DNA of 64,000 nt from sequence record LR756500.1; one strand, given 5' to 3'. Positions 18,107 through 62,237 of the stretch are shown here, piece after piece (within the stretch, counting starts at the first letter, position 1; the number at the start of each line of letters is the position of its first letter). A program made the position numbers and the translations under genes. The notes under the pieces were generated by a model. That model did not search any database. It saw nothing but the letters and a program-made list of their open reading frames with translations, and was not told the DNA's origin.

Positions 18107-18340
18107 TTAATCTTTATTTTCGTTGTTTCTTAATACTATTTCTGCATATTTTTCAAACACTAAATCTCCTATTTCTTTTTTATCATCTCGTGTTAATTTA
18201 TGATATAAATTATCATCTGTAAAAAATTCTATTTTTACTACAGGATCATCGTATGTTAAATCAGTTACATAATAAACTTTTTCATTAACTGACATTGAAC
18301 CATTTAATTCAATGGTTATTATTTCTTTATTTGTTTCCAT
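18107..18340 (-). CDS. hypothetical protein
   Basis: 77-aa ORF overlapping the upstream sigma gene stop. Confidence 0.65.
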   Translation of the reverse strand: METNKEIITIELNGSMSVNEKVYYVTDLTYDDPVVKIEFFTDDNLYHKLTRDDKKEIGDLVFEKYAEIVLRNNENKD

Positions 18341-19709: not shown

Positions 19710-20333
19710 TTATTTTACTCTACAAGCTCTTGTTGATGTAATATCCATAGGATATACTAATCTGTATGCACATCTTACTTGATCCCTAGTATAATTAGAA
19801 GAATAATAAAGTATATCATTATTCATAACTGAATATGCCATCCAATCACTTCCATCTACTTCTGTTTCATCAATAGGTTGAATTAAAGAAGCCTTTATTG
19901 ATAATTGTGTAGTGGGTTTTATAGCAGTTGATGTAGTAGTTTTAGTAGCAGTTGATGTATTAATTTTTAAACCGCCATATCCAGGAGATTGATCATCATC
20001 ATCTTCAGGCGCTGCACTAAATGTTCTAAATGATCCATTATTATTAACTGAATAACCTTCTTCTACTTCAAGTTCATCCATATATTCACGAATATCATCT
20101 TGCGTTGCCCAATAACCATCTTTTCTTAAAGCTTCTTTAATTTGAAGATTAGTGGTGCTACCATTAACTTTAATTAATTCATCAGCTTTATCTTTTACGA
20201 TTGTTTTTGTTAATTGTTTTCTCATATTATTATTTTTTTTAATTTGACAAATGCATACTTTATCCATAGTTAATCCACACTCTGGACATTTTTTTAATAA
20301 AATTGTTCTCAATATTTTATAAATTTTATTCAT
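19710..20333 (-). CDS. hypothetical protein
   Basis: Long ORF; true start may be internal (MRKQLTK). Confidence 0.7.
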   Translation of the reverse strand: MNKIYKILRTILLKKCPECGLTMDKVCICQIKKNNNMRKQLTKTIVKDKADELIKVNGSTTNLQIKEALRKDGYWATQDDIREYMDELEVEEGYSVNNNGSFRTFSAAPEDDDDQSPGYGGLKINTSTATKTTTSTAIKPTTQLSIKASLIQPIDETEVDGSDWMAYSVMNNDILYYSSNYTRDQVRCAYRLVYPMDITSTRACRVK

Positions 20334-20358: not shown

Positions 20359-20904
20359 TTAATATAAAAATGTGTTTGTATAAATTGTTTGTATTGCTTT
20401 TATTCCGTTATTGTTTATTTTTCTTGTTCCTATACCTGCAAACTTTTTAGTTAAAATAGGTTCTTTACATTCTCTGAATTCTTTAATTTCATAAACATAT
20501 TTCATCCAAATATTTTTATTTTGTTCAAAAAGATATATAGGTTTATTAACTATTGTTGCCATCGCAACAGCCCATCCAGTTCCTCCATTGACTATATTAT
20601 CTATTAATTCTCCTATTGCAAAAATAGTATCTGCATTTTTAACTTGAAACCAATTTCTCCTTAATAAATTATTTACATAAATATTATTAGAAGGATATTT
20701 TCTTTTTAAAAGTCGTGAAGCTTTTCGATAATATGAATCGGATTCCTCTAATTCTTTTTCTGTTAATATTATAAAATGTTTAGAATCAGTATTATGTGAT
20801 ATAAAAGAAAAAGCTATGGTGCTTACTCCATATTTTTCACCATAGGTTTCCCATATAGTATCAGCACCTTTAGCTCCTCCTGAATAATTAATATAATCAT
20901 TCAT
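20359..20904 (-). CDS. SLOG-like nucleotide-binding protein
   Basis: SGGAKGAD, RRNWFQV, GGTGWAV and FAGIGTR motifs. Confidence 0.55.
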   Translation of the reverse strand: MNDYINYSGGAKGADTIWETYGEKYGVSTIAFSFISHNTDSKHFIILTEKELEESDSYYRKASRLLKRKYPSNNIYVNNLLRRNWFQVKNADTIFAIGELIDNIVNGGTGWAVAMATIVNKPIYLFEQNKNIWMKYVYEIKEFRECKEPILTKKFAGIGTRKINNNGIKAIQTIYTNTFLY

Positions 20905-23387
20905 TATTGATCCTTTTTAGATTCAAGTTGTTCAACTTTTACATCAAAGAATTTAGTAATTGTTTTTTCAAGTGGAGTTCCTTTTACTGTTTCTAATAAA
21001 CCTTCTATTCCACCTTTTTGAAATATTCCATGTAAACCACCGCCTTGAGCTTTAAGATTTTCAGCTAATATTTTATTATTTTCTAAATTACCTATTGATA
21101 CTAAAGCATCTATTAATCCAGGTTGAATTGATTGATTTTTAGCAGTAACTTCTTTAATTGATAAATCAGTAAATTTAGAAGCTAAATAAAGTTTTTGTTC
21201 ATCATCGGCTTTTCTTCTTGATAATTGAGTAGCATGTATTGAATCATGTTTAGCTTGTTGTTCAATTTCATAATTTAAATCAACTAATTTAGTATTAGCT
21301 TTTTCTGCACTTCTTTTTAAATTAATTTCTGCAACTAATTTTTGAGTTTCATCTACTTCATTCATTTCGTTTCTTTTTAATTTTTCATAATTAACAACGA
21401 AATTAAGATCTCTTTCTTTTTGTTTAATTTTTAAATTATTCTCTACTGCATCGTGTTGAGAAGTTTCTAATAAATTAGCTATATCTTTATCACCAATTGT
21501 AACATTAAGTACTTCAACATCGTAAATTCTCATTCCATTTTCATCGAATACTTTTCCTACTCTGCCTTTTTCTTTTTCAGATACACCTAGAATAATATCT
21601 CTAATCATATCTGTTGAGTTATCGTTAAAGTATTCAATAGTTTGTTTTTTAACGGCATTTCTAATTACAGATCTTAAATGTTGCGTTAAAAGTTTAACAT
21701 AATTAGAAACATTAAACCATTTTTCAGATTTACCTTCAAAATTAACTCTATAAGATAATCTAATATTAACATTTACAAAATCTTTTGTAATTGCTTCAAC
21801 AATATCTGAAACAATATTATTTTCTGTTTGAAGATAAACAGTTTCAAATAATAAATGATCTGTTTTTGGTTTATTAGTAGATAAAGCTAAACTTTCTAAA
21901 GTTTCATCATATTCTAACATTACAACTTTAGGTCCAACTATTACTTCTCTTTCACCAGTCTTTTTAACCTTTTGAATAGCAAATCCTGGCCATACATTAA
22001 GAGTTACAGCTCCATCATATTTATCATTAATTTCAACAGTACGAGGTTTTGTAAACTCATTATTTCGTTGCATTTTTTCACCTACTAAACCTTGAAATGA
22101 TCCTCTGCTTTTTAATCTTCTATCATAATTTGCAAATTGTTCTTCCTCAATAGCAAAATCAGCAGATGCACTAAATAGCATATCACCCATTACTGAAGCA
22201 TCTCTAAGTTCATTTGATTTCTTTCTTAGTTCTCTATTGTAATTTAATGCTTCTGTATTACTTGGAAACCATAAATTAACTTGTTTATCAGAAAGAATTC
22301 GTTTAACGATAACTTCTGATCTAGGATCCGGAAGAAGCATTTTATTTCCTTTAACTAATTTAATGCTTCCATCATTTTTATCTAAAATGTATCTTCCTGA
22401 ACCTTCAGGAACAGCTACTGCATAATGAATTTCTCTATCACCGTATTTTATTAATGATAATTCAGGTCTTGGAAAAAATATTCTTTGTTCTTTTCCAGTA
22501 ATAAATAATTCTTCACCGGCTATTCTTTGTTTACCATCTTTACCTTCTTCTTGATAATCTTGAATAACTTTAACATAAATACCCATGTTATCATTAAGTT
22601 CAACTGCTTTGAAAATTCTATTGCCTTTTTCATCAATAAAAGTTTCAGTAGGTTTTGGAAATACTACAGCTGGACCTCTTTCATATCTTTTATCTCCATT
22701 TTGATCTAAAAGAATGCAATATTCCAATCTTTCTAATGTTACAGCATTTCTTGCATAACTGCCTCTTTCATCTTTTAATACTTCAATACCAGTAGGAGGT
22801 ATATAAAATGAAACATCAGTTCCTTTAATTAAAAGAATATTTCCAGTAAACAATTCTTCTTCCTTTATAACATTAGGTTTCTTTGTCTTTTTAGAATCAT
22901 TATCATCTTTAACATCCGCTGCTTTCAATACAGTATTTTTGATATTAGCTTTTGCAGCTACTTCATTATATACTCTTACTAAAAGATATTCATTCCATTT
23001 AAGTTGATGACCTTGTACTTCTTCTGCAATTTGACCTGGCCATAATGCAAATGTTGTAGGGCCAGGTATATTGATTTTATTACCAATATCTAATTTAACA
23101 CCTTCTTGTTTTCCTTTTGATGGATGAGAATTGTTTTCTGTCTCTGGATTTTCAAGAATAATGTATTGTCCTTCAGTTGCAACTACCCAAGTTTGAATAG
23201 ATGATTGTACTTGTACAGCCATAAACTGTCTCGTTCTTTTATCATAGATAACAGGTTTATCTGTATCCCCTGGACTAATTTTAAAAGGCCCATTTACTAT
23301 TTGAACAGTTCCTGAAGAACCATCTTGAATATAAGCGTATGTTCCTTGTGATAAAACTAAATCTCCTAATCGCTGAATTTCTGCCAT
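20904..23387 (-). CDS. major vault protein-like protein
   Basis: Repeated beta units with GP..F/L.P..E motifs, an MVP-like shoulder (TKDFVNVNIRLSYRVNF...LRSVIRNAV...NSTDMIRDIILG...GMRIYDVEVLNV) and a long C-terminal coiled coil. Confidence 0.75.
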   Translation of the reverse strand: MAEIQRLGDLVLSQGTYAYIQDGSSGTVQIVNGPFKISPGDTDKPVIYDKRTRQFMAVQVQSSIQTWVVATEGQYIILENPETENNSHPSKGKQEGVKLDIGNKINIPGPTTFALWPGQIAEEVQGHQLKWNEYLLVRVYNEVAAKANIKNTVLKAADVKDDNDSKKTKKPNVIKEEELFTGNILLIKGTDVSFYIPPTGIEVLKDERGSYARNAVTLERLEYCILLDQNGDKRYERGPAVVFPKPTETFIDEKGNRIFKAVELNDNMGIYVKVIQDYQEEGKDGKQRIAGEELFITGKEQRIFFPRPELSLIKYGDREIHYAVAVPEGSGRYILDKNDGSIKLVKGNKMLLPDPRSEVIVKRILSDKQVNLWFPSNTEALNYNRELRKKSNELRDASVMGDMLFSASADFAIEEEQFANYDRRLKSRGSFQGLVGEKMQRNNEFTKPRTVEINDKYDGAVTLNVWPGFAIQKVKKTGEREVIVGPKVVMLEYDETLESLALSTNKPKTDHLLFETVYLQTENNIVSDIVEAITKDFVNVNIRLSYRVNFEGKSEKWFNVSNYVKLLTQHLRSVIRNAVKKQTIEYFNDNSTDMIRDIILGVSEKEKGRVGKVFDENGMRIYDVEVLNVTIGDKDIANLLETSQHDAVENNLKIKQKERDLNFVVNYEKLKRNEMNEVDETQKLVAEINLKRSAEKANTKLVDLNYEIEQQAKHDSIHATQLSRRKADDEQKLYLASKFTDLSIKEVTAKNQSIQPGLIDALVSIGNLENNKILAENLKAQGGGLHGIFQKGGIEGLLETVKGTPLEKTITKFFDVKVEQLESKKDQ

Positions 23388-23410: not shown

Positions 23411-24064
23411 TTATTTGTTAATTGTTGTTAAAATATTTTTTATATTTAATGCTATATCTTCTTTACCACTTAATGCTTTAACATTTTTATTTTTATCTAT
23501 TAAATATGCAACATGTATATTTTCATCTTTCATTTCTTTTTTATCATTAGCTATTACATAATCACACTTATTTTTTTCTAATGATTCTGTTGCAATATTA
23601 ATTAATTCAAAATAATTTAATCCAACTTCAAATTTAAAACCAATAAGTATAACATCTTTATTCCATTCTTTATTCCATTCTTTAATATATGAAATTATTT
23701 TAGGATTATATTTTATTCTTTCTGCTAAAGATTGTATAAATGCTTCTTTATCGGTACTTTTTAATTTAGTAGTAATAGGTTCAAATCCAAAATCGCTAAC
23801 AGTCATTGTATGTATAACTACATCTACTAAAGGAATTAACTCCTCCATTATTTTCTTTAACGAATCAACATTTGTAATTTCATATATATTTTGTATATTT
23901 GATGGTATAACACTACCTCTAGCATAAACATAAAAAATATTATGACCAGCTCTATGTAATTCTTCTGCTATTATTGATCCTAATTTTCCAGATGATATAT
24001 TAGTTAATACTCTAACATCATCTATGTATTCACGTGTACCTCCAGCTGTAATTAAAACTCTCAT
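23411..24064 (-). CDS. coaB: phosphopantothenate-cysteine ligase (stand-alone CoaB)
   Basis: VLITAGGTREYIDDVRVLTNISSGKLG, VSDF, LIGFKFE and YVIAND motifs; ATG at 24064. Confidence 0.85.
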   Translation of the reverse strand: MRVLITAGGTREYIDDVRVLTNISSGKLGSIIAEELHRAGHNIFYVYARGSVIPSNIQNIYEITNVDSLKKIMEELIPLVDVVIHTMTVSDFGFEPITTKLKSTDKEAFIQSLAERIKYNPKIISYIKEWNKEWNKDVILIGFKFEVGLNYFELINIATESLEKNKCDYVIANDKKEMKDENIHVAYLIDKNKNVKALSGKEDIALNIKNILTTINK

Positions 24065-24110
24065 ATAATGTGACAATTAATTTTTTAATTGCGTATACGG
24101 TATAATAAAT

Positions 24111-24500: not shown

Positions 24501-25607
24501 TTAAAAATTATTTGTAATATAAGTTACATTATGAGCTTCAATATGTTTAGGTATATCAATACCTCTAAAAAGTTTGTTAATTACTTTTTCAGGGACCATT
24601 TCTTCTCTAGATAAATTTTGATCTAAAACTTTATTGAATGTAGTATTAATATAAATGATATTAATATAAGCATTATATAATGTAAATAAAGATATTAAAC
24701 TTTCTCGTGTTAATTTAGAAGTATTTGTTGCATTCCATATAAATGATTTACCTTCTCTTAAATATCCTTTAGCAATTTCTTTAGCTGCTTGTATTACATG
24801 ACCTTGTGGCTTATCAGGCTTTATTTTTAATTTAATTCTTATTTCATCTAAACTTATAACAGGTATATCTTTTAAATGAGTTTTAATATAAGTATCTTTA
24901 CCACTTCCAGGTAAGCCACTCATTAAATAAACTTTAGATTTAGTATCATTAAATGCTTCATCTGTATGATAATAAGTTTTTTTAACAATATAATTAAATT
25001 TAGTATATTCATTTTTAAATTGATATGAATTATAATAACATCCTAATTCTTCTGCATATAATCCAAACCAATTAATCTTTTCAATCATACTTTCAGTATC
25101 TGATGCAATTCTTCCCAAAGTATCATATATAGCAAGTTTATGTAATAAAAACAAATTACAATCTAAACTCATTTTAATTATATCATACTCTTGATCTTTA
25201 TTTGTTTTATCTATAATCCAAGGTGGTTCACCGTGATAAAGAATAAGATTTGCTATTTGTAATTTATCTTCAAATGTTATTATATTCTTCTGTTCAATTT
25301 TATCTAAAAGTTCTAGCGCAATATGATAACCTATTCTACTATGTCCGTGACTTCTAATATGTCCATTTTCTTCTTTACTACAATATGGTTTTCCGATATC
25401 ATGTAAAGTTATTGCATATCTTAATATTTTTTGTTGTTGTTCTGTAAATAATATAGATTCTTTTTCAAATTCATCTAAAACCATTCTGACATGCGTTAAT
25501 ACATCACCCTCCGCATGATATTCTTTATCTTGTTCGCAATGTTTCATATCATGAAAGTATGGTATAATTTCAGGTAATATTTTTTGTATATAAGTTAAAA
25601 AATCCAT
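24501..25607 (-). CDS. HD-domain plus P-loop kinase (polynucleotide kinase-like, RNA end healing)
   Basis: YHAEGDVLTH...LHDIGK and GLPGSGKDT...SLDEIR...WNATN. Confidence 0.85.
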   Translation of the reverse strand: MDFLTYIQKILPEIIPYFHDMKHCEQDKEYHAEGDVLTHVRMVLDEFEKESILFTEQQQKILRYAITLHDIGKPYCSKEENGHIRSHGHSRIGYHIALELLDKIEQKNIITFEDKLQIANLILYHGEPPWIIDKTNKDQEYDIIKMSLDCNLFLLHKLAIYDTLGRIASDTESMIEKINWFGLYAEELGCYYNSYQFKNEYTKFNYIVKKTYYHTDEAFNDTKSKVYLMSGLPGSGKDTYIKTHLKDIPVISLDEIRIKLKIKPDKPQGHVIQAAKEIAKGYLREGKSFIWNATNTSKLTRESLISLFTLYNAYINIIYINTTFNKVLDQNLSREEMVPEKVINKLFRGIDIPKHIEAHNVTYITNNF

Positions 25608-25609
25608 TT

Positions 25610-26704
25610 TTATTTTTTCATTTCATTATATAAAGTTGCTCTTTTCCAGTTTTTTGTCCAATGTTCATCTGTTTGGACATGACCTTTTCTAACCCATTTA
25701 AATATAGAATTATAAAACATATCATTTGGAAATTCATCAGCAATTCTTGTTACTATTCCTTCTTTAGGAGATATAAAAAATTCTGAATCACTTAATGTAG
25801 AATATGTTGAAACTAATTCTTCTATTTTATTATAAATAAAAGTTTCATTTACATTAAAATTTTTATCGCTTTTAAATAAAACAGGTACAGTTGGTAAATC
25901 TAACATATTTGCATAAAATTCAACTTCTTCCCATGATAACCAAAAGTCTCTACTCATATCTCTTATACCAAAAACATAAAAATGACTATCTAATTTAGAA
26001 TATTCTATGCTATGAATTCCATACATATTTTCACCACATATTTCTAATTCTCCTAAGTCATGTCTAATCATATTCCATAATGGAGATAACCAACTATCCC
26101 ATCCATTTTGTGATGGTGATATTCTTGATCTACCAAATACTCCAAAACGAGAAATACTTGTATTAGAACCATCTAATTTTTCAGTCATAATAATTTCACC
26201 TTTGCATACTTTATTTATATTTTTAGCAATTCTATCATCACTTGTTGTTCCTGGCGAATTTAAAACATGATATGTTCTTGGATATTTTTCAACAATCATA
26301 TTTCTATCTTTTTCAAATAAATGTAAAACATTTCCTTGCTTTAACATTTTCTGAACATTTTCTTGATTAAAATGATAACCTTTTAATCGTTTACCATTTT
26401 TTAAAATTGGATTACCCCATTTATCATAATCTTTAACAAACTCATTTAATGATAAATTATGAGGATATATTTGTATTAAATTTGCCTTTTCTCTTAATTC
26501 TGAAGTTGATATAATTGTTGTTTCAGCATCTATATGATGTTTAGCGCATAATGATACACCATTATTTAAATAATATCCACCATCTAAAAATAAATTTCTA
26601 TCTATTATATGATGTGCATCGATTGTAGGTTCATTACATATAACGCATTTATAATTATCTCGTTTAAATACTTGAGTCTTAAATTCTTCTCTACTTAATA
26701 ACAT
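25610..26704 (-). CDS. HNH domain fused to an RNA ligase
   Basis: RDNYKCVIC...DAHHI...LCAKHH then KYPRTYH...EKLDGSN...CGENM...KEGIV...KWVR. Confidence 0.85.
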   Translation of the reverse strand: MLLSREEFKTQVFKRDNYKCVICNEPTIDAHHIIDRNLFLDGGYYLNNGVSLCAKHHIDAETTIISTSELREKANLIQIYPHNLSLNEFVKDYDKWGNPILKNGKRLKGYHFNQENVQKMLKQGNVLHLFEKDRNMIVEKYPRTYHVLNSPGTTSDDRIAKNINKVCKGEIIMTEKLDGSNTSISRFGVFGRSRISPSQNGWDSWLSPLWNMIRHDLGELEICGENMYGIHSIEYSKLDSHFYVFGIRDMSRDFWLSWEEVEFYANMLDLPTVPVLFKSDKNFNVNETFIYNKIEELVSTYSTLSDSEFFISPKEGIVTRIADEFPNDMFYNSIFKWVRKGHVQTDEHWTKNWKRATLYNEMKK

Positions 26705-26706: not shown

Positions 26707-28191
26707 TTATCTATGGATTTTTTCACATGCGTCATTACCATCTATAAGATCTATTTCATCATCATTCCTTTTAAATCCTATACTTGTACTTACATTGTTA
26801 TTCATTTTATGACTCATTTTGGTATGTTTCTTTATTTTTTCAATAGTATCAATTTCAGCAACAATTTCACTCATTAACCACTTTTCATTCAAAACTATTT
26901 TTAAAGAATCCAATTTCATTTTTAACATATTTATACTATTATAAATATGAGCTCCGGTAACTTTTGATTCAAAATATTTATTAATTATTTTATCATTTAC
27001 AAATATTTTTGTAGTATCTTCTTTATCAATATTAAAATTATATTTAAGAGATTTTAATATAATATTTTTAATATTATCTTTAGTAATCGAATCGAATAAT
27101 AAAACTTTATCAAATCTTCCAGGTCTCTGAGCAGCTAAATCTAAAAAGCTTGCAGAGTTAGTTGCACATAAAAATCCTACTCCTTTACTTATCTTATTAG
27201 TTCCATCTAAAATATCTAAAAATAAACCTAATTTTTCAGAATAAGATCCATTATCTCTAGATCCTAAACTTAAATCAATATCATCTGATATTATAATTGA
27301 AGGCTTTAATATCTCAGCAAGTTCAACCTTTTCTTTAAAAAATTTATCAATAGAAGTTTTAATAATTGTAACTCCTAATTTATTTAATTCATTTGATAAT
27401 ACTAATGTTGATTCAGTTTTACCAGTACCTGGATTACCTACCATTAAATATCTTAAAAAGACTTCTTTTTCTTTAAATATATCATAAAATAACGATACAT
27501 TATCCATAATATCTTTTGGTAAATAAATATCATCAAAACTTCTTTCTTCTAATTTATTAATCTTCCAATCAAATTTATTATTAGACATTTCAATAAATTT
27601 ACCTTTAATATCACTTTCTTGTAAAGCAAGTTCAAATAAATTTGAATAAATGCGTTCATCAATAAAATTAGTAACTTCTCTACTATACATTCGTATTAAA
27701 TATACCATTTCACCAGAATCTATAAATTTATCAAATGCTAATAATAAGGTTAAATCTTTATGTTTAAATGTAATGTGCGTAGGATTGTTAAGACTTTCGC
27801 CTAATGTCACATTATTTTGAAATCTACCATTAAACATAAATGAAATATCATTAATATCATAAAGAGTTTGTTTGTCTTTATTTTGATATATAATATTAAA
27901 AAAATCTGAAAATATTTTAAATACTGGATATGAAAATCTTTGTCCAAAATCAAAATATGTTTTATAACTCAATGTATTAATTCCATCTCCACGTTCTTGA
28001 CCACTATTAAAGGCATTACTTCCAATATCTGTTACAGTTTTTACTATTTCTTTAGATACTTTTTCCATATTTTTTTCATTTATTATTAAATAATATTTTT
28101 CATTTACTTTTCTTTTACTATAAATTTCAGAAGCAGCTTTATTTAATCGAGTAATAAAATCTCCATAAGCACTATTTTTATCAAGATTCAT
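26707..28191 (-). CDS. AAA+ ATPase
   Basis: GNPGTGKT Walker A, ISDDID Walker B, RPGRFD arginine finger. Confidence 0.85.
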   Translation of the reverse strand: MNLDKNSAYGDFITRLNKAASEIYSKRKVNEKYYLIINEKNMEKVSKEIVKTVTDIGSNAFNSGQERGDGINTLSYKTYFDFGQRFSYPVFKIFSDFFNIIYQNKDKQTLYDINDISFMFNGRFQNNVTLGESLNNPTHITFKHKDLTLLLAFDKFIDSGEMVYLIRMYSREVTNFIDERIYSNLFELALQESDIKGKFIEMSNNKFDWKINKLEERSFDDIYLPKDIMDNVSLFYDIFKEKEVFLRYLMVGNPGTGKTESTLVLSNELNKLGVTIIKTSIDKFFKEKVELAEILKPSIIISDDIDLSLGSRDNGSYSEKLGLFLDILDGTNKISKGVGFLCATNSASFLDLAAQRPGRFDKVLLFDSITKDNIKNIILKSLKYNFNIDKEDTTKIFVNDKIINKYFESKVTGAHIYNSINMLKMKLDSLKIVLNEKWLMSEIVAEIDTIEKIKKHTKMSHKMNNNVSTSIGFKRNDDEIDLIDGNDACEKIHR

Positions 28192-28193: not shown

Positions 28194-29090
28194 TTATATA
28201 ATGTTATATTCATTCCATTCTTCTTCAGCAGCTTTAGATACTTTATCAACTATTATATTTAAATCATTTCCATATAAACCTGCGCCTGAAAATGAACCTA
28301 CTTCTAATAAACCGAATTCTCCATTCATTTCAGTAACATCTAAAGTCCATACATGTTCTGGATTAAATAATTTAGCACATTTATTAGCAAAATTATAAGC
28401 TTTATCATTAGTACATAATTCATTAATTGAATGTGAACCCATTAATATGTAATCTTTAGTCGTTGTACCTGGAATAATTGTTTCAGGATATGACCAATCT
28501 CTGTATAAACTTCCTGATATAACTTCCTGATTAACAACAACAAATCTCCATTCTTTATGCAAAGCTTTCACATCAGAAACTATTACTAATAAATCAGGGT
28601 TTATATCATAAAATCCACAAAGTTTTATTCCTTCTTCATAATTATTATATGATAGAACTGTGCCTGTAAAATCCTTTAATCCTGAATTAGGTCTAATAAA
28701 AATATGACCGCTATGACCACTTTTATTATATAAATTATAAAGATAATCTTTTCTTCTAATAAGATCACCAAATGGTAACATAGTATAATTTTTATGTACT
28801 AATAAATCTCCAAATATAGGATAGTATGAAGTACAATTATATTTGGTTTCATCTAAATAAACCCCTGGTATCCATTTAACATATCGTTTAATTTTTATAC
28901 CTAAATTCAATGAACCATAAAACACTACACAATCATCATCATTAAATAATTTAGAAATATAACTTAAATCATTTTCAAAAGGAATATATTCAATTAACTT
29001 ATATTCAATTTGTTTTTTCTTTAATACTTTTATTAAATAAGGTTCAGTATCAGTAAATAGATTCTTTTCAATTAACCATTTAGTTTTCAT
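28194..29090 (-). CDS. ATP-grasp domain protein (DUF4343/R2K-like)
   Basis: FIRPNSGLKDFTG, EWRFVV, TLDV...LLEVGSFSGAGLY. Confidence 0.75.
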   Translation of the reverse strand: MKTKWLIEKNLFTDTEPYLIKVLKKKQIEYKLIEYIPFENDLSYISKLFNDDDCVVFYGSLNLGIKIKRYVKWIPGVYLDETKYNCTSYYPIFGDLLVHKNYTMLPFGDLIRRKDYLYNLYNKSGHSGHIFIRPNSGLKDFTGTVLSYNNYEEGIKLCGFYDINPDLLVIVSDVKALHKEWRFVVVNQEVISGSLYRDWSYPETIIPGTTTKDYILMGSHSINELCTNDKAYNFANKCAKLFNPEHVWTLDVTEMNGEFGLLEVGSFSGAGLYGNDLNIIVDKVSKAAEEEWNEYNII

Positions 29091-29094
29091 AATA

Positions 29095-29349
29095 TTATTC
29101 TAAATTTGCTGCTAAAAATATTGCAGCTTCCCATCCATCTTTTGTAGGTTCAAATGTTGCAAATGGAGATTTAATTCTTTTATCTTCTTTAAATGAATCT
29201 GGAAGATGTTTTCTAATCATAATTTTATTTATATCTGTATTAAAAAATAATAAAATTTTTTGACCATTAAAATCTTTTATATCTTTATATTCTACTAAAC
29301 ATACACAAGATTTATCCATCTGCTCGAATTTTATAACTTTAAATTTCAT
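29095..29349 (-). CDS. hypothetical protein
   Basis: 84-aa ORF, operon-packed. Confidence 0.65.
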   Translation of the reverse strand: MKFKVIKFEQMDKSCVCLVEYKDIKDFNGQKILLFFNTDINKIMIRKHLPDSFKEDKRIKSPFATFEPTKDGWEAAIFLAANLE

Positions 29350-29354: not shown

Positions 29355-29597
29355 TTAACTAATTAAAAAATTATAACACTTTTCTAAAACTTTTTCTTTA
29401 TCTTCAGTATATTCAGCTTCCCATACAACTAAAACTTTATAATTTTGTCTTTTTAAAAATTTAATTCTTAATTCTTCATGTAACCATATATCTTTAACTT
29501 TAGTCCATCCTCCTATTTTATCGTCAGGTTTATTTTTTAAAGGATTAGCATGCCAAAAATCTCCGTTAAATTCAATTACTTTATTATTACTAAACAT
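29355..29597 (-). CDS. C-terminal fragment of a Vsr-like/PD-(D/E)XK homing endonuclease
   Basis: VIEFNGDFWHANP...YKVLVVWE; lacks the upstream catalytic D strand. Confidence 0.65.
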   Translation of the reverse strand: MFSNNKVIEFNGDFWHANPLKNKPDDKIGGWTKVKDIWLHEELRIKFLKRQNYKVLVVWEAEYTEDKEKVLEKCYNFLIS

Positions 29598-30871
29598 TAA
29601 CTTATTTCAACTAAATATTTTATTGTACATTTTTCTGGTTCATATATTGTAAATTCATCATTTATAAGATCTGCTCCTCCATGTGCATATACTGAATCAT
29701 ATTTATTGTCATCAAGCATTTTTTTACTGAGTTTATATGCATCAGAATTATGTTTTGTCCAATGCCATTGTTTTCCTACATTAACAGCATAAATCGCCAA
29801 AAATCCTGAATCATCATTGCCTTTAGCCCAATAAGAACCTCTAAATGATGAATAACCAGCAGATTTTTTAGCTTTATTTGCAAAATAGACTGCATCGCCC
29901 CACATGGACCCCGAATATATTGAATTTTTCGGTCTAATTAATAAACCTTTTTGAAGTATAAAATACCAATTTTGATTTCTAGAACCGTGCCAAAATAATT
30001 CTTCTCTTTTAGGAACATTATCATATTTAGAAGTATGATTTTCATATTTATTTTGGGTCTCAATATTAACTACTTTATAAGCTTTTTTGAAATTATTTTT
30101 CATATCACCTAAAGCCTTTTTAATCTGTTCATTTTCATCTGCATTAGTTTCTTCTATTAATAATCCTAATTCTTCAAGAATAGTAACATCTTTATAATCT
30201 TCATGTTTTTCTTGAGCAACTTGTATTGCTTTCTTTTTCTTAGTATTAGCTAATACTTGACCAGCCATAGTATCTAATGTATCTTGTTCACTAGATATTT
30301 TTTTGCTAGCTTCTTCTAATTCTTTTTGATTTGTAATAGCAGTAAACAAATGATATTGAACTTTATTCATTTGTCTTGGAATTATTGTAAAAAGCTTTAA
30401 TAACTTTTTATTTAATTCTTTATGATCAACATTAATTTTTAATGAGCCTGATATATCATTAATAACTTCTTGAGCTTCATCAACCATTGCTTGTGTTACT
30501 GCTTCTGAAGTAACAGTATATTTTTCTTGCACAACAACGTTTGCATACTGTTGTAATCTACTAAAAATTTTATTAATAATTGGATTATCAATTTCTTTTC
30601 TTACTATTTTTTTAGTAACAGTAGTTTCTAATCCATTGCCTTCAATAGTTTCTTTATGAAGATGAGTTACATCCTGATAACCTTTTTTAGTTTTTGATCT
30701 ATAAATAGAATCCCATTCACTAATAGAATAACTTTTAGATACACTCGTTTTTTGAACACGTCCATATTCAACATGCATTGTTCCATCTCCATGGTCATAA
30801 AGATCATAAAATTTATTATTGTTCAGTTCCGAAACCATGATTAATTTAATAACTTTAGTGTAATTACTCAT
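29597..30871 (-). CDS. PARP-type ADP-ribosyltransferase (WGR, helical and catalytic domains)
   Basis: NNKFYDL...EYGRV (WGR-like), KLFTIIPR helical domain, FWHGS, VYFA and NDEFTIY (H-Y-E triad). Confidence 0.9.
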   Translation of the reverse strand: MSNYTKVIKLIMVSELNNNKFYDLYDHGDGTMHVEYGRVQKTSVSKSYSISEWDSIYRSKTKKGYQDVTHLHKETIEGNGLETTVTKKIVRKEIDNPIINKIFSRLQQYANVVVQEKYTVTSEAVTQAMVDEAQEVINDISGSLKINVDHKELNKKLLKLFTIIPRQMNKVQYHLFTAITNQKELEEASKKISSEQDTLDTMAGQVLANTKKKKAIQVAQEKHEDYKDVTILEELGLLIEETNADENEQIKKALGDMKNNFKKAYKVVNIETQNKYENHTSKYDNVPKREELFWHGSRNQNWYFILQKGLLIRPKNSIYSGSMWGDAVYFANKAKKSAGYSSFRGSYWAKGNDDSGFLAIYAVNVGKQWHWTKHNSDAYKLSKKMLDDNKYDSVYAHGGADLINDEFTIYEPEKCTIKYLVEIS

Positions 30872-34849: not shown

Positions 34850-36010
34850 TTAATGATTATATTTTTCATTTTTTATTTCATTTTCAATATTACAGCGATA
34901 TTGATTTTCATATTTATCTCTAAAATATGATGTATAAAATATTTCTTTTTTATCTAAAATATTTAATAAAAATTCCTTTCTTTTCTTAAAGAAATCTTTT
35001 TCATTATAATTAGAAAATTCACTAATTATATCAAGTACATTTTCATTATATCTATATTTTTCTCCCCATTGTGCTAAATCAATATCACATAATATTTTAC
35101 CTAAAGCATTTGTTACTTCCTCTGAATGTTTAGTTGCTAATATTGCATCATAAATTCCATCAACTATTCTTTCTTCTAAAGAAGGCTTAATATTTAACAA
35201 TATAGAATTTACTGCTTCGTGTGCACTTAATGTTTCATTTTCTTTATACTCTGCTACATCAGTAGAATAAATATAATCATGATAAAAAATACTAATTTCT
35301 AAAATAGCTTTATCAATTTCATCTATAGTATTAGATTCACAATAATTATCTAAATAATTTATCATATCATATATATGATAAATGTCGTGAAAATGTCTAT
35401 TTTCATTTGTATATACTTTAAATATTTCATCAAAATTTGTTTCAGCTATTTCAATATTAAATATATTAGTTAATTTTTTATAAGCATCAATATATCTTTC
35501 CTTTAGAAACTTATAATATAATAAATAAAATTCAGTTAAATTAGGTACAAATTTACCAACTTCTTTTCTCCATCCTGTTATTCCAATTAATCCTCTAACC
35601 ATAGAAGAACTCAAATGTTCATATTCTCTTGGAGTAATAAAATAAATAGTATCTAACGTATTATTGTCAATTAAATCTTTATTAATATAATTTAATGTTC
35701 TTTCTTCTAAAAAATCTTTTTCATTTCTTAGACCTCTTACTAAATATTTAATATCTTTTTCAACTGCATATTTAGCAATAAATCCATCTTTAAATTCTCT
35801 AACATGAACATTATTTATATTAGATGTTTTTAAAAAGTCAATAACTATTTTTTTACGTATTTCTAAGCTAAAAAAATATTTATCTTTTTTAGATGGATTT
35901 TCAGCTATTAATACATAAAGATTATCGAATATCTCTGCAGCTTTTTCTATAACCCAACAATGACCACGAGTTAAAATATCAAAACTTCCTGCATATATAG
36001 CATTTTTCAT
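34850..36010 (-). CDS. coaD: phosphopantetheine adenylyltransferase fused to an HD-like phosphohydrolase
   Basis: YAGSFDILTRGH, VRGLRNEKDF..E and SSSMVR, then RHFHDIYHI...FYHDYIY...CDID. Confidence 0.85.
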   Translation of the reverse strand: MKNAIYAGSFDILTRGHCWVIEKAAEIFDNLYVLIAENPSKKDKYFFSLEIRKKIVIDFLKTSNINNVHVREFKDGFIAKYAVEKDIKYLVRGLRNEKDFLEERTLNYINKDLIDNNTLDTIYFITPREYEHLSSSMVRGLIGITGWRKEVGKFVPNLTEFYLLYYKFLKERYIDAYKKLTNIFNIEIAETNFDEIFKVYTNENRHFHDIYHIYDMINYLDNYCESNTIDEIDKAILEISIFYHDYIYSTDVAEYKENETLSAHEAVNSILLNIKPSLEERIVDGIYDAILATKHSEEVTNALGKILCDIDLAQWGEKYRYNENVLDIISEFSNYNEKDFFKKRKEFLLNILDKKEIFYTSYFRDKYENQYRCNIENEIKNEKYNH

Positions 36011-36879: not shown

Positions 36880-37989
36880 TTATTTAACTATTAATTTTTT
36901 TCTAAATATTGCATTTTTATTAGTTGCAATTACAATATATTGTCCAATAGGTATTCTTTCATGTGGATCTATAGCTTCAATTATATCATTCGTAAATCCT
37001 GTAATAATTATTTTTGAATATAATTCTTGTCCTAATTCATTAATAACAACCACCATAATTTCTTCAGCACTAGAATGACTTATATGTATAAATAATGATT
37101 CATCTACATCTTTAGGATTAGGATAAATATCAAAAGAAAAAGGTTGTTCATATATTATGTATTTAGTATCAAAATATTTATAAAATCCATTTTTATCTAC
37201 TTGTTTTAATCTATAATAATTTATTCCATTTGTTGGATTTATATCATATATTGAATATTCAATATTTTCATTAGAATTGCCCACAGCAAAAACAATATCA
37301 AGCATATTAAAATTAATAAGATTATTTGATTTTTCTATAATAAATAAATCTGTATTAATTTCAGATGATGTAGCCCAATCTATTTTAACTTCATTATCTA
37401 TTAAACTTACTTCAAAATTTAATAATTCAATTGGTAAAGTATTTACTATTATGCTATCAGTAATAACAACAGAACCTGAAATAGTAATAGGATCAATTCC
37501 CATTATACAACAACTACCTGATACAGAACTTGCAATTATTGTTCCATTACCATTTATGTCTGCTCCTACTCCATTATTAATATTACCAGTTACAAATAAA
37601 TTTCCATTAATTGTTATATTATTTGAATTATTGTTATTTATTAAATCATTTAAAATAATAAGAGTTGCACCTTCATCTATTATAACTATACATCCATTAT
37701 TAAATTGAATATTTTGTACAACTAATATACCACAACCTATTATATGTAATGAACATTGAGATCCAATTATTAATGTTCCTCTACATTCTGCATTTATTGA
37801 ATCTGTTCCAGATATAGTTATTGTATCTTTAGAGGGATCAGGTATTCCATGATCCCATGTTCCAGTAATACACCAATTTCCATCCTTTATAGATGTTGTA
37901 TGTTTAGCAATGGCTTTAAGATAATTATCTTGACTTGATACACTTAAACTTAATAAACAAAATAATAAAGTTAAAATTAATTTTATCAT
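36880..37989 (-). CDS. secreted protein with a T9SS type-A C-terminal sorting domain
   Basis: Sec signal peptide; LPIELLNF...W.TSSE.N...YYRLKQVD domain; IYPNP...GQ...G.Y...KKLIVK. Confidence 0.85.
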   Translation of the reverse strand: MIKLILTLLFCLLSLSVSSQDNYLKAIAKHTTSIKDGNWCITGTWDHGIPDPSKDTITISGTDSINAECRGTLIIGSQCSLHIIGCGILVVQNIQFNNGCIVIIDEGATLIILNDLINNNNSNNITINGNLFVTGNINNGVGADINGNGTIIASSVSGSCCIMGIDPITISGSVVITDSIIVNTLPIELLNFEVSLIDNEVKIDWATSSEINTDLFIIEKSNNLINFNMLDIVFAVGNSNENIEYSIYDINPTNGINYYRLKQVDKNGFYKYFDTKYIIYEQPFSFDIYPNPKDVDESLFIHISHSSAEEIMVVVINELGQELYSKIIITGFTNDIIEAIDPHERIPIGQYIVIATNKNAIFRKKLIVK

Positions 37990-38865: not shown

Positions 38866-39939
38866 TTATAATAAGTTTGTTGCCATTTCTGCCAATGGAC
38901 TTCTTTCTCCTTTTAATAAATTAATATGAGTAAACATAGGTTGACCCTTTAATTTGTGAATTAAATAAGTTAATCCGTTAGAGTGTTTATCTAAATAAGG
39001 AGAATCAATTTGAAATATATCTCCAGTAAAAACAAATTTTGCTCCCTGACCAGCTCTAGTTATAATAGTTTTAACTTCATGAGGAGTTAAATTTTGAGCT
39101 TCATCAATAATAAAATAAGTATTAGCTAAACTACGTCCTCGTATATATGCTAAAGGTGTTATAATTAATTTATCATTTTTTTGTAATTCCTCTATTTGTC
39201 GTAGTTCATTACTGCCCTTACTAAAATTGTATTTTATAACACCTAAATTATCAAATAATGGTTGCATATAAGGAGCAATTTTTTCATTAACATCACCTGG
39301 TAAAAATCCTATGTCTCTATTAGCTAATGGAACAATAGGTCTTGCTAACATTATTGATGCATATTTATTAGATTGCTCTAAAGCAGCGGTAAGTGCCAGA
39401 AGGGTTTTACCAGTATTATGTGAACTTATTCCATCTCCACCCCAATATCTATGATTTTCATGCAATACTTCAAAATCATATACCTCACTATCCTTTAATT
39501 TTTTTATTTCTTTAATTTCACTCCATCCATCTTTAGTATAAATAGCATCACCTATATTTAAATTTTCAGTTTTTTCCCAGCCTAATCTTTTTTCTAATAA
39601 ATGATCAAATGAACATTTTATAGAAAGCTTATTTGATGTTAGTATTTTAAAACATTCTCTTTTTGATTTTTTATAAAAATCACCAATCTCTTGATATCCA
39701 TCAGGCGTATCAATTAATATCATATTAGAAATATTAGAATTATAAAGGGTTTCAATTTCTATAATTTCACTATAATTACGTATATGTTCATTAAAAAATG
39801 CATTTATTTCTTTTTCATAATATTTACTTATCTCATTAATAGATATATCATCAGTAATATTTAAAACTTTTCGAATTTCAATGACATTATAATATTCTAA
39901 TAATTCTTCTATTTTTTCTTCTATTTTTAAATTCATCAT
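38866..39939 (-). CDS. phoH: split-intein C-fragment (175 aa) fused to the PhoH C-terminal half
   Basis: Intein blocks [15 protein letters not shown] and SSHN (N at 39415-17), followed by TGKTLLAL...RGRSL...IIDEAQN...GDIFQID. Confidence 0.9.
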
Positions 39940-41179
39940 GTATAATTTTTGTTATTTTTTTAATTGTATTAAATATATTATCACTATCCCAAATAATTAA
40001 TACATTTTTATTATTATTAATAGCAATATTTTGTTTATAAATATCTTTTTTAAAAATCACTTCTGCATCTTCTTTTGAATATAAATGTCTCCAATTATTC
40101 CATTCATTTATTGATAATTTTTCTTTATTAGGATGAATATGACTTCCATTATATTCAATAATTATATCTAAATCTTTTATATAAAAATCGTAAAAATATA
40201 TTTTTTTAGTTTCTTGATCATATATAAAATATTCATTCTCTTTATACATATATTCAAACTCTATTCCATAATCTTTCTTACATATTTCTATTAACTTATC
40301 AAAAAATATAATAGATGATTTAGAATAAAATTTATTTTTCCAAGCTTTAATTTTTTTGTTTAAAATTTCTATTTTTTCTTCATCGGATTTATTATTTAAT
40401 GTTTGCTGCCATTTATCTTGTCTTTTTTTCCATACTAAATATCCTTCTTGTTTTCCATACTTTTCTATACATTTTTCTAAACTAAATGTACTTTGTCTTT
40501 CTGATAAAGCTTTATATGCTTCTAATAAACTTAAACCTTTATTTAAAAAATGTTGTAAAGTAGTAGGATAAATATATGTTCTCTCTCCACTAACTTTATA
40601 TCTTTTTATAGCTTCAGCTCCTTTACTTTGTTTATTATAAATTTTTTCTTTAGCTTCTTCATCAGTATATAAGTTATTAGTTATAGGATTAATTTTATTT
40701 AAATAAAATTCCCATCTATTACTATTACCAAACGATTTTTTAATTTCATCATAATTTTTTTTATTTTTAGTTGTTACATATTTTTTATTGTATATTTCTT
40801 TTTGTACTTTTATAGCTTCATATATTGATATATTTCGTTTTTTAGATATATTTTTAATAGAAATATTTCCTTGACGATTTTTAATCAATAGTTTAGTTTC
40901 AAGTTCAGACCAACCTCTATTTAAATAATATTCATTAGAAGTATTTGAATTTGGACCATATCCTAATAAAGTATTTGTTATTTTAGTTTTTAAATTAATA
41001 TTATTAAATATTTCTAAATATAAATCATATTTTATTTTTAAATTTTCTGTATTATAAGTATTAATGTGTTTTATATTTTGTTTTATAATATCACAATATT
41101 TATTAAAATTTAGTGGTTCATTTAATAATATAAAATTTCTTTTTTCTTTAATTTTTTTAAATAATAAATTTAAACTCAT
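39887..41179 (-). mobile_element. free-standing Vsr-like/PD-(D/E)XK homing endonuclease between the phoH halves
   Basis: YFYDFYIKDLDIIIEYNGSHIHP...VLIIWD C-terminal nuclease; helical YY..RGW N-terminal region. Confidence 0.75.
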
Positions 41180-41225
41180 AATATATTTTTATTTTATATA
41201 TTATGAGTTTAAATTTATTATCCAG

Positions 41226-54015: not shown

Positions 54016-54016
54016 T

Positions 54017-61415: not shown

Positions 61416-61428
61416 ATGTTTATATTTG

Positions 61429-61500: not shown

Positions 61501-61507
61501 ATTTTAA

Positions 61508-62089: not shown

Positions 62090-62111
62090 ATTAAATCTAT
62101 TTAAAAATTTG

Positions 62112-62185: not shown

Positions 62186-62187
62186 AT

Positions 62188-62225: not shown

Positions 62226-62237
62226 ATATTTTATTAG

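Follow-up and report, generated by a model that had tools for sequence, protein, structure and literature searches.

A PARP1/2-like ADP-ribosyl transferase gene of a huge phage, its conserved companion family F32 and candidate genes for ADP-ribose removal and NAD+ supply

What does an enzyme of the PARP type do in a phage, and which other phage proteins does it work with? In the literature, what prokaryotic and phage PARPs do physiologically still counts as unknown (PMC8120803). A gene for such an enzyme is found in the stretch of 64,000 nucleotides of record LR756500.1 that was analysed here (the window), which is part of the genome of a huge groundwater phage. The initial annotation had read the protein as a WGR-helical-ART enzyme with an intact H-Y-E triad and had placed it in a phage-run cycle of writing, erasing and resupplying ADP-ribosylation. 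The PARP gene, its domains and its triad codons are located as follows.

29597..30871, minus strand: PARP gene, exact ORF bounds, 424 aa, WGR–helical–ART
30856..30662, minus strand: WGR domain of PARP, residues ~6-70
30589..30092, minus strand: helical regulatory domain (HD) of PARP, residues ~95-260
30091..29600, minus strand: ART domain of PARP, residues ~261-424
29989..29987, 29887..29885 and 29656..29654, minus strand: codons of the PARP triad residues H295, Y329 and E406, respectively

All three domains and the triad were found, and this part of the earlier reading holds. The motifs HGS, YFA and NDEF were placed at residues 295-297, 329-331 and 404-407, and H295, Y329 and E406 align to H862-G-S, Y896 and E988 of PARP1/2. 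The triad is invariant across the 32 relatives of the phage PARP. In the alignment to PARP1 the nicotinamide-pocket residues K336, S337 and Y340 are kept, as are G296 and S297. The WGR motif reads Y-G-R, with Y36 in place of the tryptophan and with G37 and R38 invariant in the 32 relatives, a variant that is common to most bacterial PARPs (PMC5966428).

In PARP2 and PARP1 all three domains (WGR, helical and ART) are covered by a profile of the 32 relatives (E ~1e-24), which matches PARP4 less well (E=1.6e-10 vs E=1e-24 for PARP1/2). The profile aligned from position 15 to the WGR domain of PARP2/PARP1, including the NNNKFY and GRV motifs, and its positions 120-334 align to the catalytic fragment of PARP1 including the HD. 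An AlphaFold model of the protein (pLDDT 80) has helices at residues 97-260. The top Foldseek matches to this model are WGR-HD-CAT chains of PARP2 and PARP1 (E ~3e-19), with the full HD-ART part aligned at a TM of ~0.6 and an identity to the human PARPs of ~16-18% in the structural alignment. The precomputed Pfam annotation holds PF00644 only, which is usual for many bacterial PARPs (PMC5966428). By its predicted architecture and its aligned triad, the phage protein is confirmed as an intact PARP1/2-like ADP-ribosyl transferase. It looks catalytically competent and minimal, consisting of the WGR domain, the putatively autoinhibitory helical domain and the ART domain. PARP3 and PARP4 carry the H-Y-E triad as well and are nevertheless mono-transferases; therefore the triad is no proof of polymer formation.

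The PARP family was detected in more than 900 metagenomic relatives, in 206 viral contigs and in 109 cellular loci, mostly of Bacteroidota and some of Clostridia. The cellular relatives are 34-46% identical to the phage PARP, which was assigned to phrog_23333 (E=3e-52). The phage PARP belongs to a clade common to Bacteroidota, Clostridia and their phages.

This spread allowed for a comparison of the genes beside PARP in 80 bacterial and 80 phage loci. One co-directional string of the window contains the following genes.

18929..19708, minus strand: macrodomain protein, residues 1-150 of the DarG/TARG1/Poa1p type, C-terminal ~110 aa without assignment
19710..20333, minus strand: F32-family gene, small and previously unannotated, separated by 1 bp from the macrodomain gene
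20359..20904, minus strand: SLOG/DprA-like protein, in the same co-directional string as the MVP-like, F32 and macrodomain genes
20904..23387, minus strand: MVP-like protein, E=7e-14 to the major vault protein, shoulder at equivalent positions

The most faithful companion gene of PARP is F32, and not the vault-like protein. F32 is located within 3 kb of PARP in 45/80 bacterial loci and follows it immediately on the same strand in 38/80; it is also present at 16/80 phage PARP loci. In reverse look-ups starting from F32, PARP was found within 1.1 kb in all six informative cases. The family comprises at least 1,100 sequence clusters, and gp030 of Cellulophaga phage phi4:1 matches its profile with 51 bits. 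A homologue search with one 97-aa F32 protein returned this protein alone, and the matches of a degenerate DNA pattern for F32 were mostly chance. The initial annotation had overlooked F32, and in the literature that we found on bacterial PARPs such a partner is not mentioned.

The true start of the window F32 gene is likely at 20225 (171 aa), because homology begins at M37. The protein consists of a ~70-aa core, a Ser/Thr-rich and acidic linker and a ~50-aa C-terminal domain; the long forms of the family additionally carry a fused WGR-like segment. The core may be a winged helix; the matches that suggest this fold are non-significant (E 0.3-0.9 to ArgR-N) or, for the structural ones, of low TM. 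In a prediction of the PARP–F32 complex an ipSAE of 0.37 was obtained, compared to 0.00 for the best control, which is classed as 'weak support'. The mark for this score is reached by 58/80 solved complexes and 2/110 mismatched pairs, and the band up to 0.60 holds 7/80 solved complexes and both passing mismatches; for scores in the range of 0.37 the tool warns that most of its calls are wrong unless the pairing was already probable. The prediction runs share at least 39% of the contacts, with a partner pLDDT of at least 67. It is an attractive but tentative idea, to which we give clearly less than even weight, that PARP and F32 form an unrecognised and widespread two-gene system of Bacteroidota and phages. 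Such a pair would act as an ADP-ribosylation switch triggered by nucleic-acid breaks, with F32 as obligate partner, be it an HPF1-like cofactor for targeting or for the active site, the main substrate or a DarG-like antidote that could stand in for the macrodomain, and would be used in repair or in phage-host conflict.

The vault-like gene itself had been recognised correctly as an MVP homologue, and the nearest Atlas clusters of its product carry MVP_shoulder and Vault_3. Its proposed coupling to PARP, after the example of the vault PARP (PARP4) and MVP, found no support. The likeness is that the phage genome encodes an MVP homologue at a distance of 6 kb from an enzyme of the PARP family, and that PARP4 has the WGR-HD-ART arrangement in its PARP1-homology region (PMC10711553). 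However, the MVP-interacting (MINT) region and other PARP4-specific domains were not found in the phage PARP; its 424 aa are filled by WGR, HD and ART and thus leave no room for an MVP-docking domain. Moreover, co-occurrence of MVP and PARP across phages was not seen. Only 2/27 large PARP-positive contigs encode MVP, both of them from one phage in which it lies ~250 kb from PARP. MVP is absent from 10/10 near-complete PARP-positive records and was found within 10 kb of PARP in 0/80 other loci. Neither vault RNA or Y RNA nor a TROVE-domain partner was detected in the window, where the Rfam search gave five tRNAs only. Being rare in PARP-positive phages and never adjacent elsewhere, MVP was rejected as a partner; for the neighbouring SLOG/DprA-like gene, which is real as well, no connection with PARP emerged either.

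For the removal of ADP-ribose the phage encodes, besides the macrodomain protein, a second candidate.

43415..44215, minus strand: ADP-ribosylglycohydrolase (ARH), GDxxGxxxE, TDDT and GGDTDT metal/catalytic motifs all present

The macrodomain is the sole one found in the genome. It scores 52 bits against the DarG equivalog model NF048014 with a cut-off of 250 and is therefore not a DarG equivalog. A gene for a ~145-aa macrodomain immediately precedes PARP, with the same orientation, in nine bacterial and two phage loci, where the genes overlap or are separated by near-zero gaps. Linkage of ARH and PARP was found in four bacterial loci, and the window ARH is 43-47% identical to the ARHs flanking PARP in three Bacteroidota genomes. 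Among the 27 large PARP-positive phage contigs a macrodomain is present in ten and an ARH in five. In the genome of the window phage, PARP, the F32/macrodomain pair and ARH are 9-13 kb apart and none are adjacent, with 10 kb between macrodomain and PARP. The coupling of writer and erasers has comparative support, and from the gene linkages it is plausible that the erasers would act on the PARP products.

A PTH2-fold hydrolase was also considered as a dedicated PARP eraser.

50855..51424, minus strand: PTH2-fold hydrolase (phrog_3668), beside PARP in one large phage clade

With 48/80 loci it is the commonest PARP neighbour, and the fold was confirmed. It was rejected as specific partner because ~49/80 of the phage PARP loci represent one syntenic clade and because in the reverse look-up PARP was near only 14/80 PTH2-like loci. 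Many PTH2-like loci carry DNA ligase, Rnl2 or RlaP without PARP, and the hydrolase belongs to a ligase/RNA-repair module and not to PARP.

The genes for NAD+ synthesis are located partly within the window and partly just beyond it.

44896..46083, minus strand: PncB, nicotinate phosphoribosyltransferase, 457 bits to NF003704 (cut-off 379) and 420 bits to TIGR01514 (cut-off 270)
47604..48515, minus strand: NadM-like NMN/NaMN adenylyltransferase (residues 7-156) with Nudix domain (176-285), domain-level support only
G000:C1:340609-341379, minus strand: NadE, NAD synthetase, 119 bits (cut-off 63.65), ~14 kb past the window

The NadM-type match of the fusion protein (E=1.5e-8) is far under the equivalog cut-offs. 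In addition, a 277-aa PncA-like ORF (L082:1408-2241) matches yeast Pnc1 with E=1.8e-8, and its WPxHC motif and Cys region are conserved; against the E. coli-type nicotinamidase model the ORF scores 31 bits with a cut-off of 174. A PncA-like protein, PncB, a putative NMNAT and NadE are thus all encoded in the phage, the first and the last of them outside the window. The PncA-like nicotinamidase would allow nicotinamide, which PARP and NADases release, to be turned back into NAD+ and so complete the cycle. A further NAD+ consumer of the phage is its own NAD-dependent DNA ligase. In other loci PncB adjoins PARP directly (L036, L060) or NadE is found near it (L263), and a NAD-salvage phosphoribosyltransferase of the NadV/PncB type is encoded in 13/27 large PARP-positive phage contigs. 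The macrodomain, ARH, PncB and NMNAT-Nudix genes on which the proposed cycle was built are all real, the last one at domain level. What stands of the cycle are the eraser genes adjoining PARP in relatives and the presence of the NAD genes; as an obligatory set it does not stand, since no eraser or NAD gene is found in all PARP-positive contigs.

The surroundings of PARP include genes for nucleic acid ligation and repair. PARP heads a packed co-directional string that ends in an RNA ligase and HD-PNK.

29355..29597, minus strand: 80-aa C-terminal remnant of a phrog_22677 endonuclease-like mobile gene
29095..29349, minus strand: phrog_13501, packed downstream of PARP
28194..29090, minus strand: phrog_7313, packed downstream of PARP, homologue in phage XacN1 annotated as DUF4343-containing
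26707..28191, minus strand: AAA ATPase, in the packed co-directional string after PARP
25610..26704, minus strand: HNH-fused RNA ligase, in the same string
24501..25607, minus strand: HD phosphohydrolase fused to polynucleotide kinase (HD-PNK), end of the string

Full-length copies of phrog_22677 come after PARP in loci L011/L012. A ligase is located within 10 kb of PARP in 51/80 phage loci, a count without formal base-rate control and with ~49 of the 80 loci belonging to the one syntenic clade. In individual loci RtcB, NAD-dependent DNA ligase, an RlaP-like nucleotidyltransferase, a UvsX-like recombinase or a Ro-like protein are found near PARP, and in phi4:1 the gene order is tRNA nucleotidyltransferase, PARP, F32 and DNA ligase. 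A control sample of related phages was sought via RIIA, which gave no relatives; therefore the co-occurrence rates stand without a matched control and were set loosely against published base rates. Scans for promoters and terminators gave results at chance level. On a larger scale PARP belongs to an extended block of small genes of one direction, which also contains RIIA/RIIB, a sigma-factor-like gene and tRNAs.

The explanation that we favour, and consider somewhat better than an even bet, is a nucleic-acid-triggered minimal PARP with an F32 partner, phage-encoded erasers and self-supplied NAD+. It starts from the observed architecture, conserved residues, gene linkages and pathway genes. If PARP1-3 and the DNA-dependent enzyme of Herpetosiphon are taken as models, the WGR domain would bind a nucleic-acid discontinuity, and binding to the break would lift the autoinhibition by the helical domain. 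The ART domain would then use NAD+ to ADP-ribosylate itself and nearby targets with mono- or poly-ADP-ribose. PARP probably works with the dedicated small F32-family partner encoded at 19710..20333, and in phages it sits among genes for nucleic-acid ligation and repair. The mark could plausibly be taken off by the TARG1/DarG-type macrodomain and the ARH, and the phage's route from PncA through PncB and NMNAT to NadE would restock NAD+. We infer that breaks activate the enzyme, and likewise its targets, the formation of polymer, the acting eraser and the role of F32. The absence of a detectable macrodomain or ARH from many PARP-positive phages argues against this explanation, as does the distance of 9-13 kb between PARP, F32/macrodomain and ARH in the genome analysed here.

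Other explanations join the same genes differently. The components could form one integrated write/erase/resupply system run by the phage, in which the vault-like protein might take up PARP or be acted on by it, as with PARP4 in eukaryotes. That all components are located within ~60 kb of one genome would fit, as would the macrodomain, ARH, PncB and NadE genes beside PARP in relatives and F32 abutting the macrodomain gene in one string with the SLOG and MVP genes; the MVP shoulder has also been reported to bind ADP-ribose (10.64898/2026.05.01.722283). We nevertheless regard it as improbable, given the rarity of MVP and the lack of space for a docking domain in PARP, and given that in each case half or most of the PARP-positive contigs lack the macrodomain, ARH or NAD-salvage gene. 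Furthermore, jumbo phages commonly encode NAD+ salvage whether or not they have a PARP (PMC9503650, PMC11662467). It is a little less improbable, yet still unlikely, that macrodomain and ARH are independent counter-defence enzymes which remove host ADP-ribosylation (DarT-type DNA, RNA or protein marks) or degrade ADP-ribose-derived signals. The macrodomain belongs to the DarG/TARG1 clade, orphan DarG-like antidotes are known in phages (PMC11825919, PMC13309987), and macrodomains occur in ten of the 27 contigs and widely across jumbo phages (PMC9503650). The macrodomain is, however, far under the DarG cut-off, and in several loci of bacteria and phages macrodomain or ARH genes lie right beside members of the PARP family. 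This role of the erasers is compatible with the favoured explanation. For PARP itself countering DarT, as had been proposed, no result of the analysis speaks.

PARP might also be the toxic part of a conflict module, a nucleic-acid-triggered transferase or NAD+ consumer that is checked by the macrodomain, as DarT is by DarG, or by F32 as antidote or autoregulator. In bacteria such a module would serve abortive infection, and in phages the exclusion of superinfecting phages or the shut-off of the host. The tight macrodomain-PARP operons point in this direction, and macrodomain and F32 never share one PARP locus, as would be expected if one could replace the other. Like many antitoxins, F32 is a small protein and may be a winged helix that binds DNA, and the complex prediction, with its weak support, agrees with binding. 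But the gap of 9 kb between PARP and F32 in the window is unusual for an addiction pair, PARP has an autoinhibitory helical domain of its own, and its neighbourhoods consist of repair and replication genes and not of defence islands; we consider such a module rather unlikely. Least likely of all appears a role as host-takeover effector that modifies host RNA polymerase or translation factors like Alt, ModA and ModB of T4, as has been suggested for jumbo-phage PARPs (PMC7824862). The block of small genes with RIIA/RIIB is typical of early/auxiliary regions and ARTs are common takeover tools of phages (PMC9503650). However, the PARP-F32 pair is chromosomal in many Bacteroidota, where host takeover would make no sense, the WGR-HD modules indicate nucleic-acid-dependent activation, and PARP is neither fused to nor located beside head-packaging genes.

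One huge groundwater phage genome thus holds a full set of putative enzymes for reversible and self-supplied ADP-ribosylation. With F32 a specific and testable partner gene is added, which is present in a cultured system, the gp030-gp031 pair of Cellulophaga phage phi4:1, while the tempting parallel with the eukaryotic vault is removed as unsupported. Enzyme set and partner gene open an experimental route to PARP function outside eukaryotes.

Compared to known systems, the best sequence and fold matches of the phage PARP over WGR, HD and ART are human PARP1/2/3, with HGS, Y, K-S..Y and E conserved. In contrast to these, it lacks zinc fingers, BRCT domain and basic N-terminal tail and starts with the WGR domain at about residue 6. 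HaPARP of Herpetosiphon aurantiacus, CdPARP of C. difficile CD160 and the 'clade 1' PARPs of Cytophagales/Clostridiales (PMC5966428) share with it the minimal WGR-helical-ART architecture, the Y-G-R variant and the H-Y-E triad. HaPARP is activated by DNA, CdPARP is active, and both make PAR in vitro that is reversed by their PARGs (PMC8120803). The window copy differs in that its genome is that of a huge phage (429-462 kb); a bacterial-type PARG was not found in the phage genome, and the candidate erasers are instead the TARG1/DarG-type macrodomain and the ARH.

Annotated phage PARPs (phi4:1 gp031, XacN1 ORF414 and FBKp34 gp111; PHROG 23333) are of the same family and length with 24-28% identity. 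In phi4:1, PARP has gp030 as F32 partner and a DNA ligase beside it, unlike in the window, where PARP sits 9-13 kb from F32, macrodomain and ARH. Klebsiella phage FBKp34 has a macrodomain 2.4 kb upstream of its PARP, and ORF414 of Xanthomonas phage XacN1 is flanked by homologues of phrog_13501 and phrog_7313 as in the window. In these two proteobacterial phages F32 was not detected within 3 kb of PARP. DarT-DarG likewise combines an ART-fold writer with a macrodomain eraser in one operon, similar to the Clostridia-type relatives and two phage loci, whereas the writer of the window phage is of the PARP type with WGR-HD and is not adjacent to the macrodomain.

Phage and bacterial PARPs of the WGR-HD-ART architecture are already published, and the window PARP is one more member; phage MVPs and the NAD+ pathways of jumbo phages are likewise already published. 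The known phage pathways comprise Preiss-Handler clusters of jumbo phages (PMC11662467) and NadV-NadM salvage (PMC9503650), and like the 'NAD-jumbo phages' the window phage encodes PncB, a predicted NMNAT-Nudix fusion and NadE. In difference to these pathways, the window phage adds a PncA-like candidate nicotinamidase and has PncB instead of the commoner NadV.

The open reading frame 29597..30871(-) (424 aa) codes for a real PARP1/2-like enzyme that looks intact and belongs to a family already known from prokaryotes and phages. As a single sequence it matches the catalytic domains of PARP2 and PARP1 (E=2e-9), and HGS 295-297, Y329, K336-S337, Y340 and E406 align with catalytic and nicotinamide-pocket residues. 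A profile built from 32 relatives aligns with PARP2/PARP1 from the WGR through the helical domain (HD) to the end of the catalytic domain (ART) with E about 1e-24; PARP3, PARP4 and the tankyrases score progressively weaker. In the predicted model (pLDDT 80) the N-terminal domain is β-rich and contains a single helix; a middle domain of six helices and the ART domain follow. The model's top Foldseek matches are the DNA-break-bound WGR-HD-CAT chains of PARP2 and PARP1. The catalytic triad is invariant across the 32 relatives, and YGR stands in place of WGR, a variant described in most bacterial PARPs (PMC5966428). Reading frame, profile, Foldseek and triad thus confirm the WGR-HD-ART architecture with H-Y-E triad that was read from the sequence in the initial annotation.

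The companion genes named there are real as well, as judged by profile and domain matches. The macrodomain (18929..19708(-)) is of the DarG/TARG1/Poa1p type, the ARH (43415..44215(-)) is nearest to archaeal MJ1187 and ARH3 with three of three metal-binding motifs present, PncB (44896..46083(-)) scores over its curated cut-off, the NMNAT-Nudix fusion (47604..48515(-)) is recognised at domain level, and the 827-aa protein at 20904..23387(-) matches major vault protein (MVP, E=7e-14). Neither a bacterial-type PARG nor a second macrodomain was found in the phage genome. Outside the window the phage encodes NadE (over its cut-off) and a nicotinamidase-like protein that matches yeast Pnc1 (E=1.8e-8) and retains the WPxHC motif. 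With these four candidate steps encoded by the phage, nicotinamide could in principle be recycled to NAD+, as far as gene content predicts. A NAD-dependent DNA ligase is a second NAD+ consumer in this phage.

That ligase lies in two ORFs about 1 kb apart (profile positions 6-292 and 294-654; 158742-161734 of the phage's genome record, G000:C1), which suggests a second insertion-interrupted gene. In the window a PhoH-like gene is split (38866..42128(-)), with profile positions 2-261 in 41226..42128 and 262-442 in 38866..39939. A 430-aa phrog_22677 endonuclease-like ORF (39887..41179) sits between the halves, and Rfam found no intron RNA at this gene. An 80-aa phrog_22677 remnant lies right after PARP (29355..29597). 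The phage also carries two coenzyme A pathway genes (23411..24076 / 34850..36010, both (-)): a CoaB-like phosphopantothenate-cysteine ligase (174 bits, under the cut-off of 265) and a CoaD pantetheine-phosphate adenylyltransferase fused to a phosphohydrolase domain (129 bits, over the cut-off of 103).

The PARP, eraser and NAD+ genes had been read as one phage-controlled write/erase/resupply ADP-ribosylation cycle, possibly coupled to the vault-like protein or directed against DarT. Searches with the window genes (tblastn and phmmer) covered 80 viral loci, each taken as 10 kb to either side of PARP. Homologues of the macrodomain, ARH, MVP and NMNAT-Nudix were found in none of the 80 within this range, and a PncB homologue directly adjoins PARP in two. 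Among 27 PARP-positive contigs no shorter than 100 kb, 10 of them near-complete records, MVP occurs in 2 (none near-complete), ARH in 5 (2 near-complete), the macrodomain family in 10 (5) and a NadV/PncB-type phosphoribosyltransferase in 13 (4). By both counts no component is obligatory and a fixed toolkit is not borne out. The same counts leave the vault link unsupported: both MVP-positive contigs are one phage, with MVP and PARP about 250 kb apart. Domain composition also defeats the vault idea, since the PARP has no domain beyond WGR-HD-ART. An anti-DarT role of the PARP found no support either. The MVP-like gene is translationally packed with a SLOG/DprA-like gene (20359..23387(-)), and the F32 and macrodomain genes follow downstream. 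Since a 2026 preprint describes ADP-ribose bound in the MVP shoulder (10.64898/2026.05.01.722283), a putative ADP-ribose or NAD-binding role of the phage MVP deserves a look.

Writer and eraser do prove to be linked when the comparison is widened to cellular relatives and to erasers of greater divergence. A macrodomain of about 150 aa lies immediately upstream of PARP in two phage loci, one of them ordered NAD-dependent DNA ligase, macro, PARP, and in Klebsiella phage FBKp34 a macrodomain lies 2.4 kb upstream. In nine cellular loci, mostly of Clostridia, a co-directional gene for a macrodomain of about 145 aa precedes PARP (gaps -12 to +119 bp). In three Bacteroidota loci a divergently transcribed ARH adjoins PARP; these ARHs share 43-47% identity with the window ARH, exceeding the 39-41% between the PARPs. 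One locus is ordered macro, PARP, ARH. Because erasers adjoin PARP in relatives, a reversible ADP-ribosylation cycle is plausible for this PARP family, although the genes are dispersed in this phage. Of the proposed cycle, erasers and NAD+ resupply therefore stand as plausible companions, but not as one fixed system.

The most faithful partner gene of PARP is a member of a small-protein family that we call F32:

19710..20333, (-): F32 gene, an unannotated ORF that stops 1 bp short of the macrodomain gene; homologues lie beside PARP in unrelated phage contexts

Among 80 species-level cellular loci, 45 have an F32 gene inside the 3-kb PARP flanks; in 38 it directly follows PARP and is co-directional with it. 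In the reverse direction, seven F32 matches were picked regardless of context; all six informative ones have PARP on the same strand within 1.1 kb. In the cultured Cellulophaga phage phi4:1 the hypothetical protein gp030, encoded with PARP (gp031) on one side and a DNA ligase on the other, is an F32 member (51 bits; flanking ORFs at most 2 bits). No member was detectable near the PARP of XacN1 or FBKp34, and F32 and a macrodomain are co-located at no PARP locus examined. The family comprises 1,118 representative clusters (E≤1e-3) and has no Pfam annotation. Its members fall into three length classes (roughly 90, 160-200 and 290-330 aa) and have in common a core in which about 70 aa are conserved. 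The core shows a weak likeness to ArgR-type winged helices (E 0.3-0.9). Long proteins of 290-345 aa, encoded at about 10 bacterial loci besides L186:3526-4473, combine the core with a segment like the N-terminal domain of B. fragilis Q64V53; in one long bacterial form this segment matches that domain (2ra8, E=7e-4), and its motif looks WGR-like by sequence. Complex prediction weakly suggests that PARP may bind F32, with a score of 0.37 (best control 0.00); at least 39% of contacts are shared between runs, and the partner pLDDT is 67 or more. Of 80 solved complexes 58 attained this mark, as did 2 of 110 mismatches; of those, 7 solved complexes and both mismatches scored 0.60 or under.

A single syntenic clade accounts for about 49 of the 80 viral loci; its gene order is ATP-dependent DNA ligase, Rnl2-type RNA ligase, PARP, PTH2-fold hydrolase. 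Outside this clade there are about a dozen separate contexts that place PARP close to a DNA ligase (ATP- or NAD-dependent), RtcB, an RlaP-like nucleotidyltransferase, a UvsX-like recombinase or a Ro-like RNA-binding protein. In the window PARP is first in a string of genes spaced 0-5 bp, uninterrupted by terminator-like sites and ending with an HNH-RNA ligase and HD-polynucleotide kinase; its phrog_13501 and phrog_7313 genes also flank the XacN1 PARP. Since ligase and repair genes recur around PARP, a break-sensing enzyme working with ligation and repair would fit these data, taken as raw recurrence uncorrected for base rates.

The phrog_13501 and phrog_7313 genes lie directly downstream of PARP (28194..29349(-)), with homologues in L266, the locus of the distant Xanthomonas phage XacN1, where the phrog_7313 homologue is annotated as DUF4343-containing; a phrog_7313 protein is near PARP in four metagenomic loci. 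The PTH2-fold protein was considered as PARP partner; its fold was confirmed, but it belongs to the ligase module rather than to PARP. This divergent family, phrog_3668 (window 50855..51424(-); loci L086-L162; motifs GIQxGHA, ILNGGT(T/S)N, EPDL and DER), is present on 242 or more viral contigs, often with DNA ligase, Rnl2 and RlaP-like nucleotidyltransferase. A canonical 110-aa PTH2 is encoded elsewhere in the same phage (G000:C1:374287-374502).

LR756500.1 is an unannotated 'uncultured phage' record of 462,018 bp whose bases 1-64000 are identical to the window; a 429,198-bp virus record in IMG/VR (estimated completeness 96%) also contains it. Its DNA (G+C about 24%) is present in groundwater metagenomes; none of the RNA runs checked holds the region. 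Further features are:

36880..37989, (-): 369-aa protein with C-terminal type IX secretion sorting domain (TIGR04183, above cut-off)
61428..62753, (-): tRNAs Gly-TCC, Thr-TGT, Gly-GCC, Gln-TTG and Tyr-GTA
52987..56374, (-): RIIA/RIIB homologues
18327..18872, (-): sigma-factor-like protein
49712..50728, (-): radical-SAM protein
44340..44891, (-): ClpP-like protease

TIGR04183 is a Bacteroidota marker. Together with the best match of the window macrodomain, in Bacteroides, and the cellular PARP relatives, the sorting domain points to a Bacteroidota host.

The PARP matches PHROG 23333 (E=3e-52). More than 900 relatives come from a collection of metagenomic proteins, many of them encoded on 250-500 kb contigs, and further relatives lie on 206 IMG/VR contigs and at 109 sites in cellular genomes. 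Those in cells are overwhelmingly from Bacteroidota (Cytophagales, Saprospiraceae, Microscillaceae, a complete Bernardetia chromosome), plus Clostridia. A 425,361-bp 'Candidatus Pacearchaeota archaeon' MAG contig (L163 / L001) has the same size and PARP match as an IMG/VR huge-phage contig and appears to be a phage that was binned with archaea.

Annotated phage PARPs are known from Cellulophaga, Xanthomonas, Klebsiella and Stenotrophomonas phages. PARP-type enzymes are among the commoner viral ARTs in a published survey (PMC9503650), PARPs in jumbo phages were already noted (PMC7824862), jumbo-phage NAD+ synthesis was described together with PARP (PMC11662467), and so were phage MVPs (10.1101/2023.11.10.566534). 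Phage PARP, phage MVP and jumbo-phage NAD+ synthesis are therefore of a known kind; our analysis adds the pairing of PARP with F32 genes and the repair context, which an existing phage-host system makes testable.
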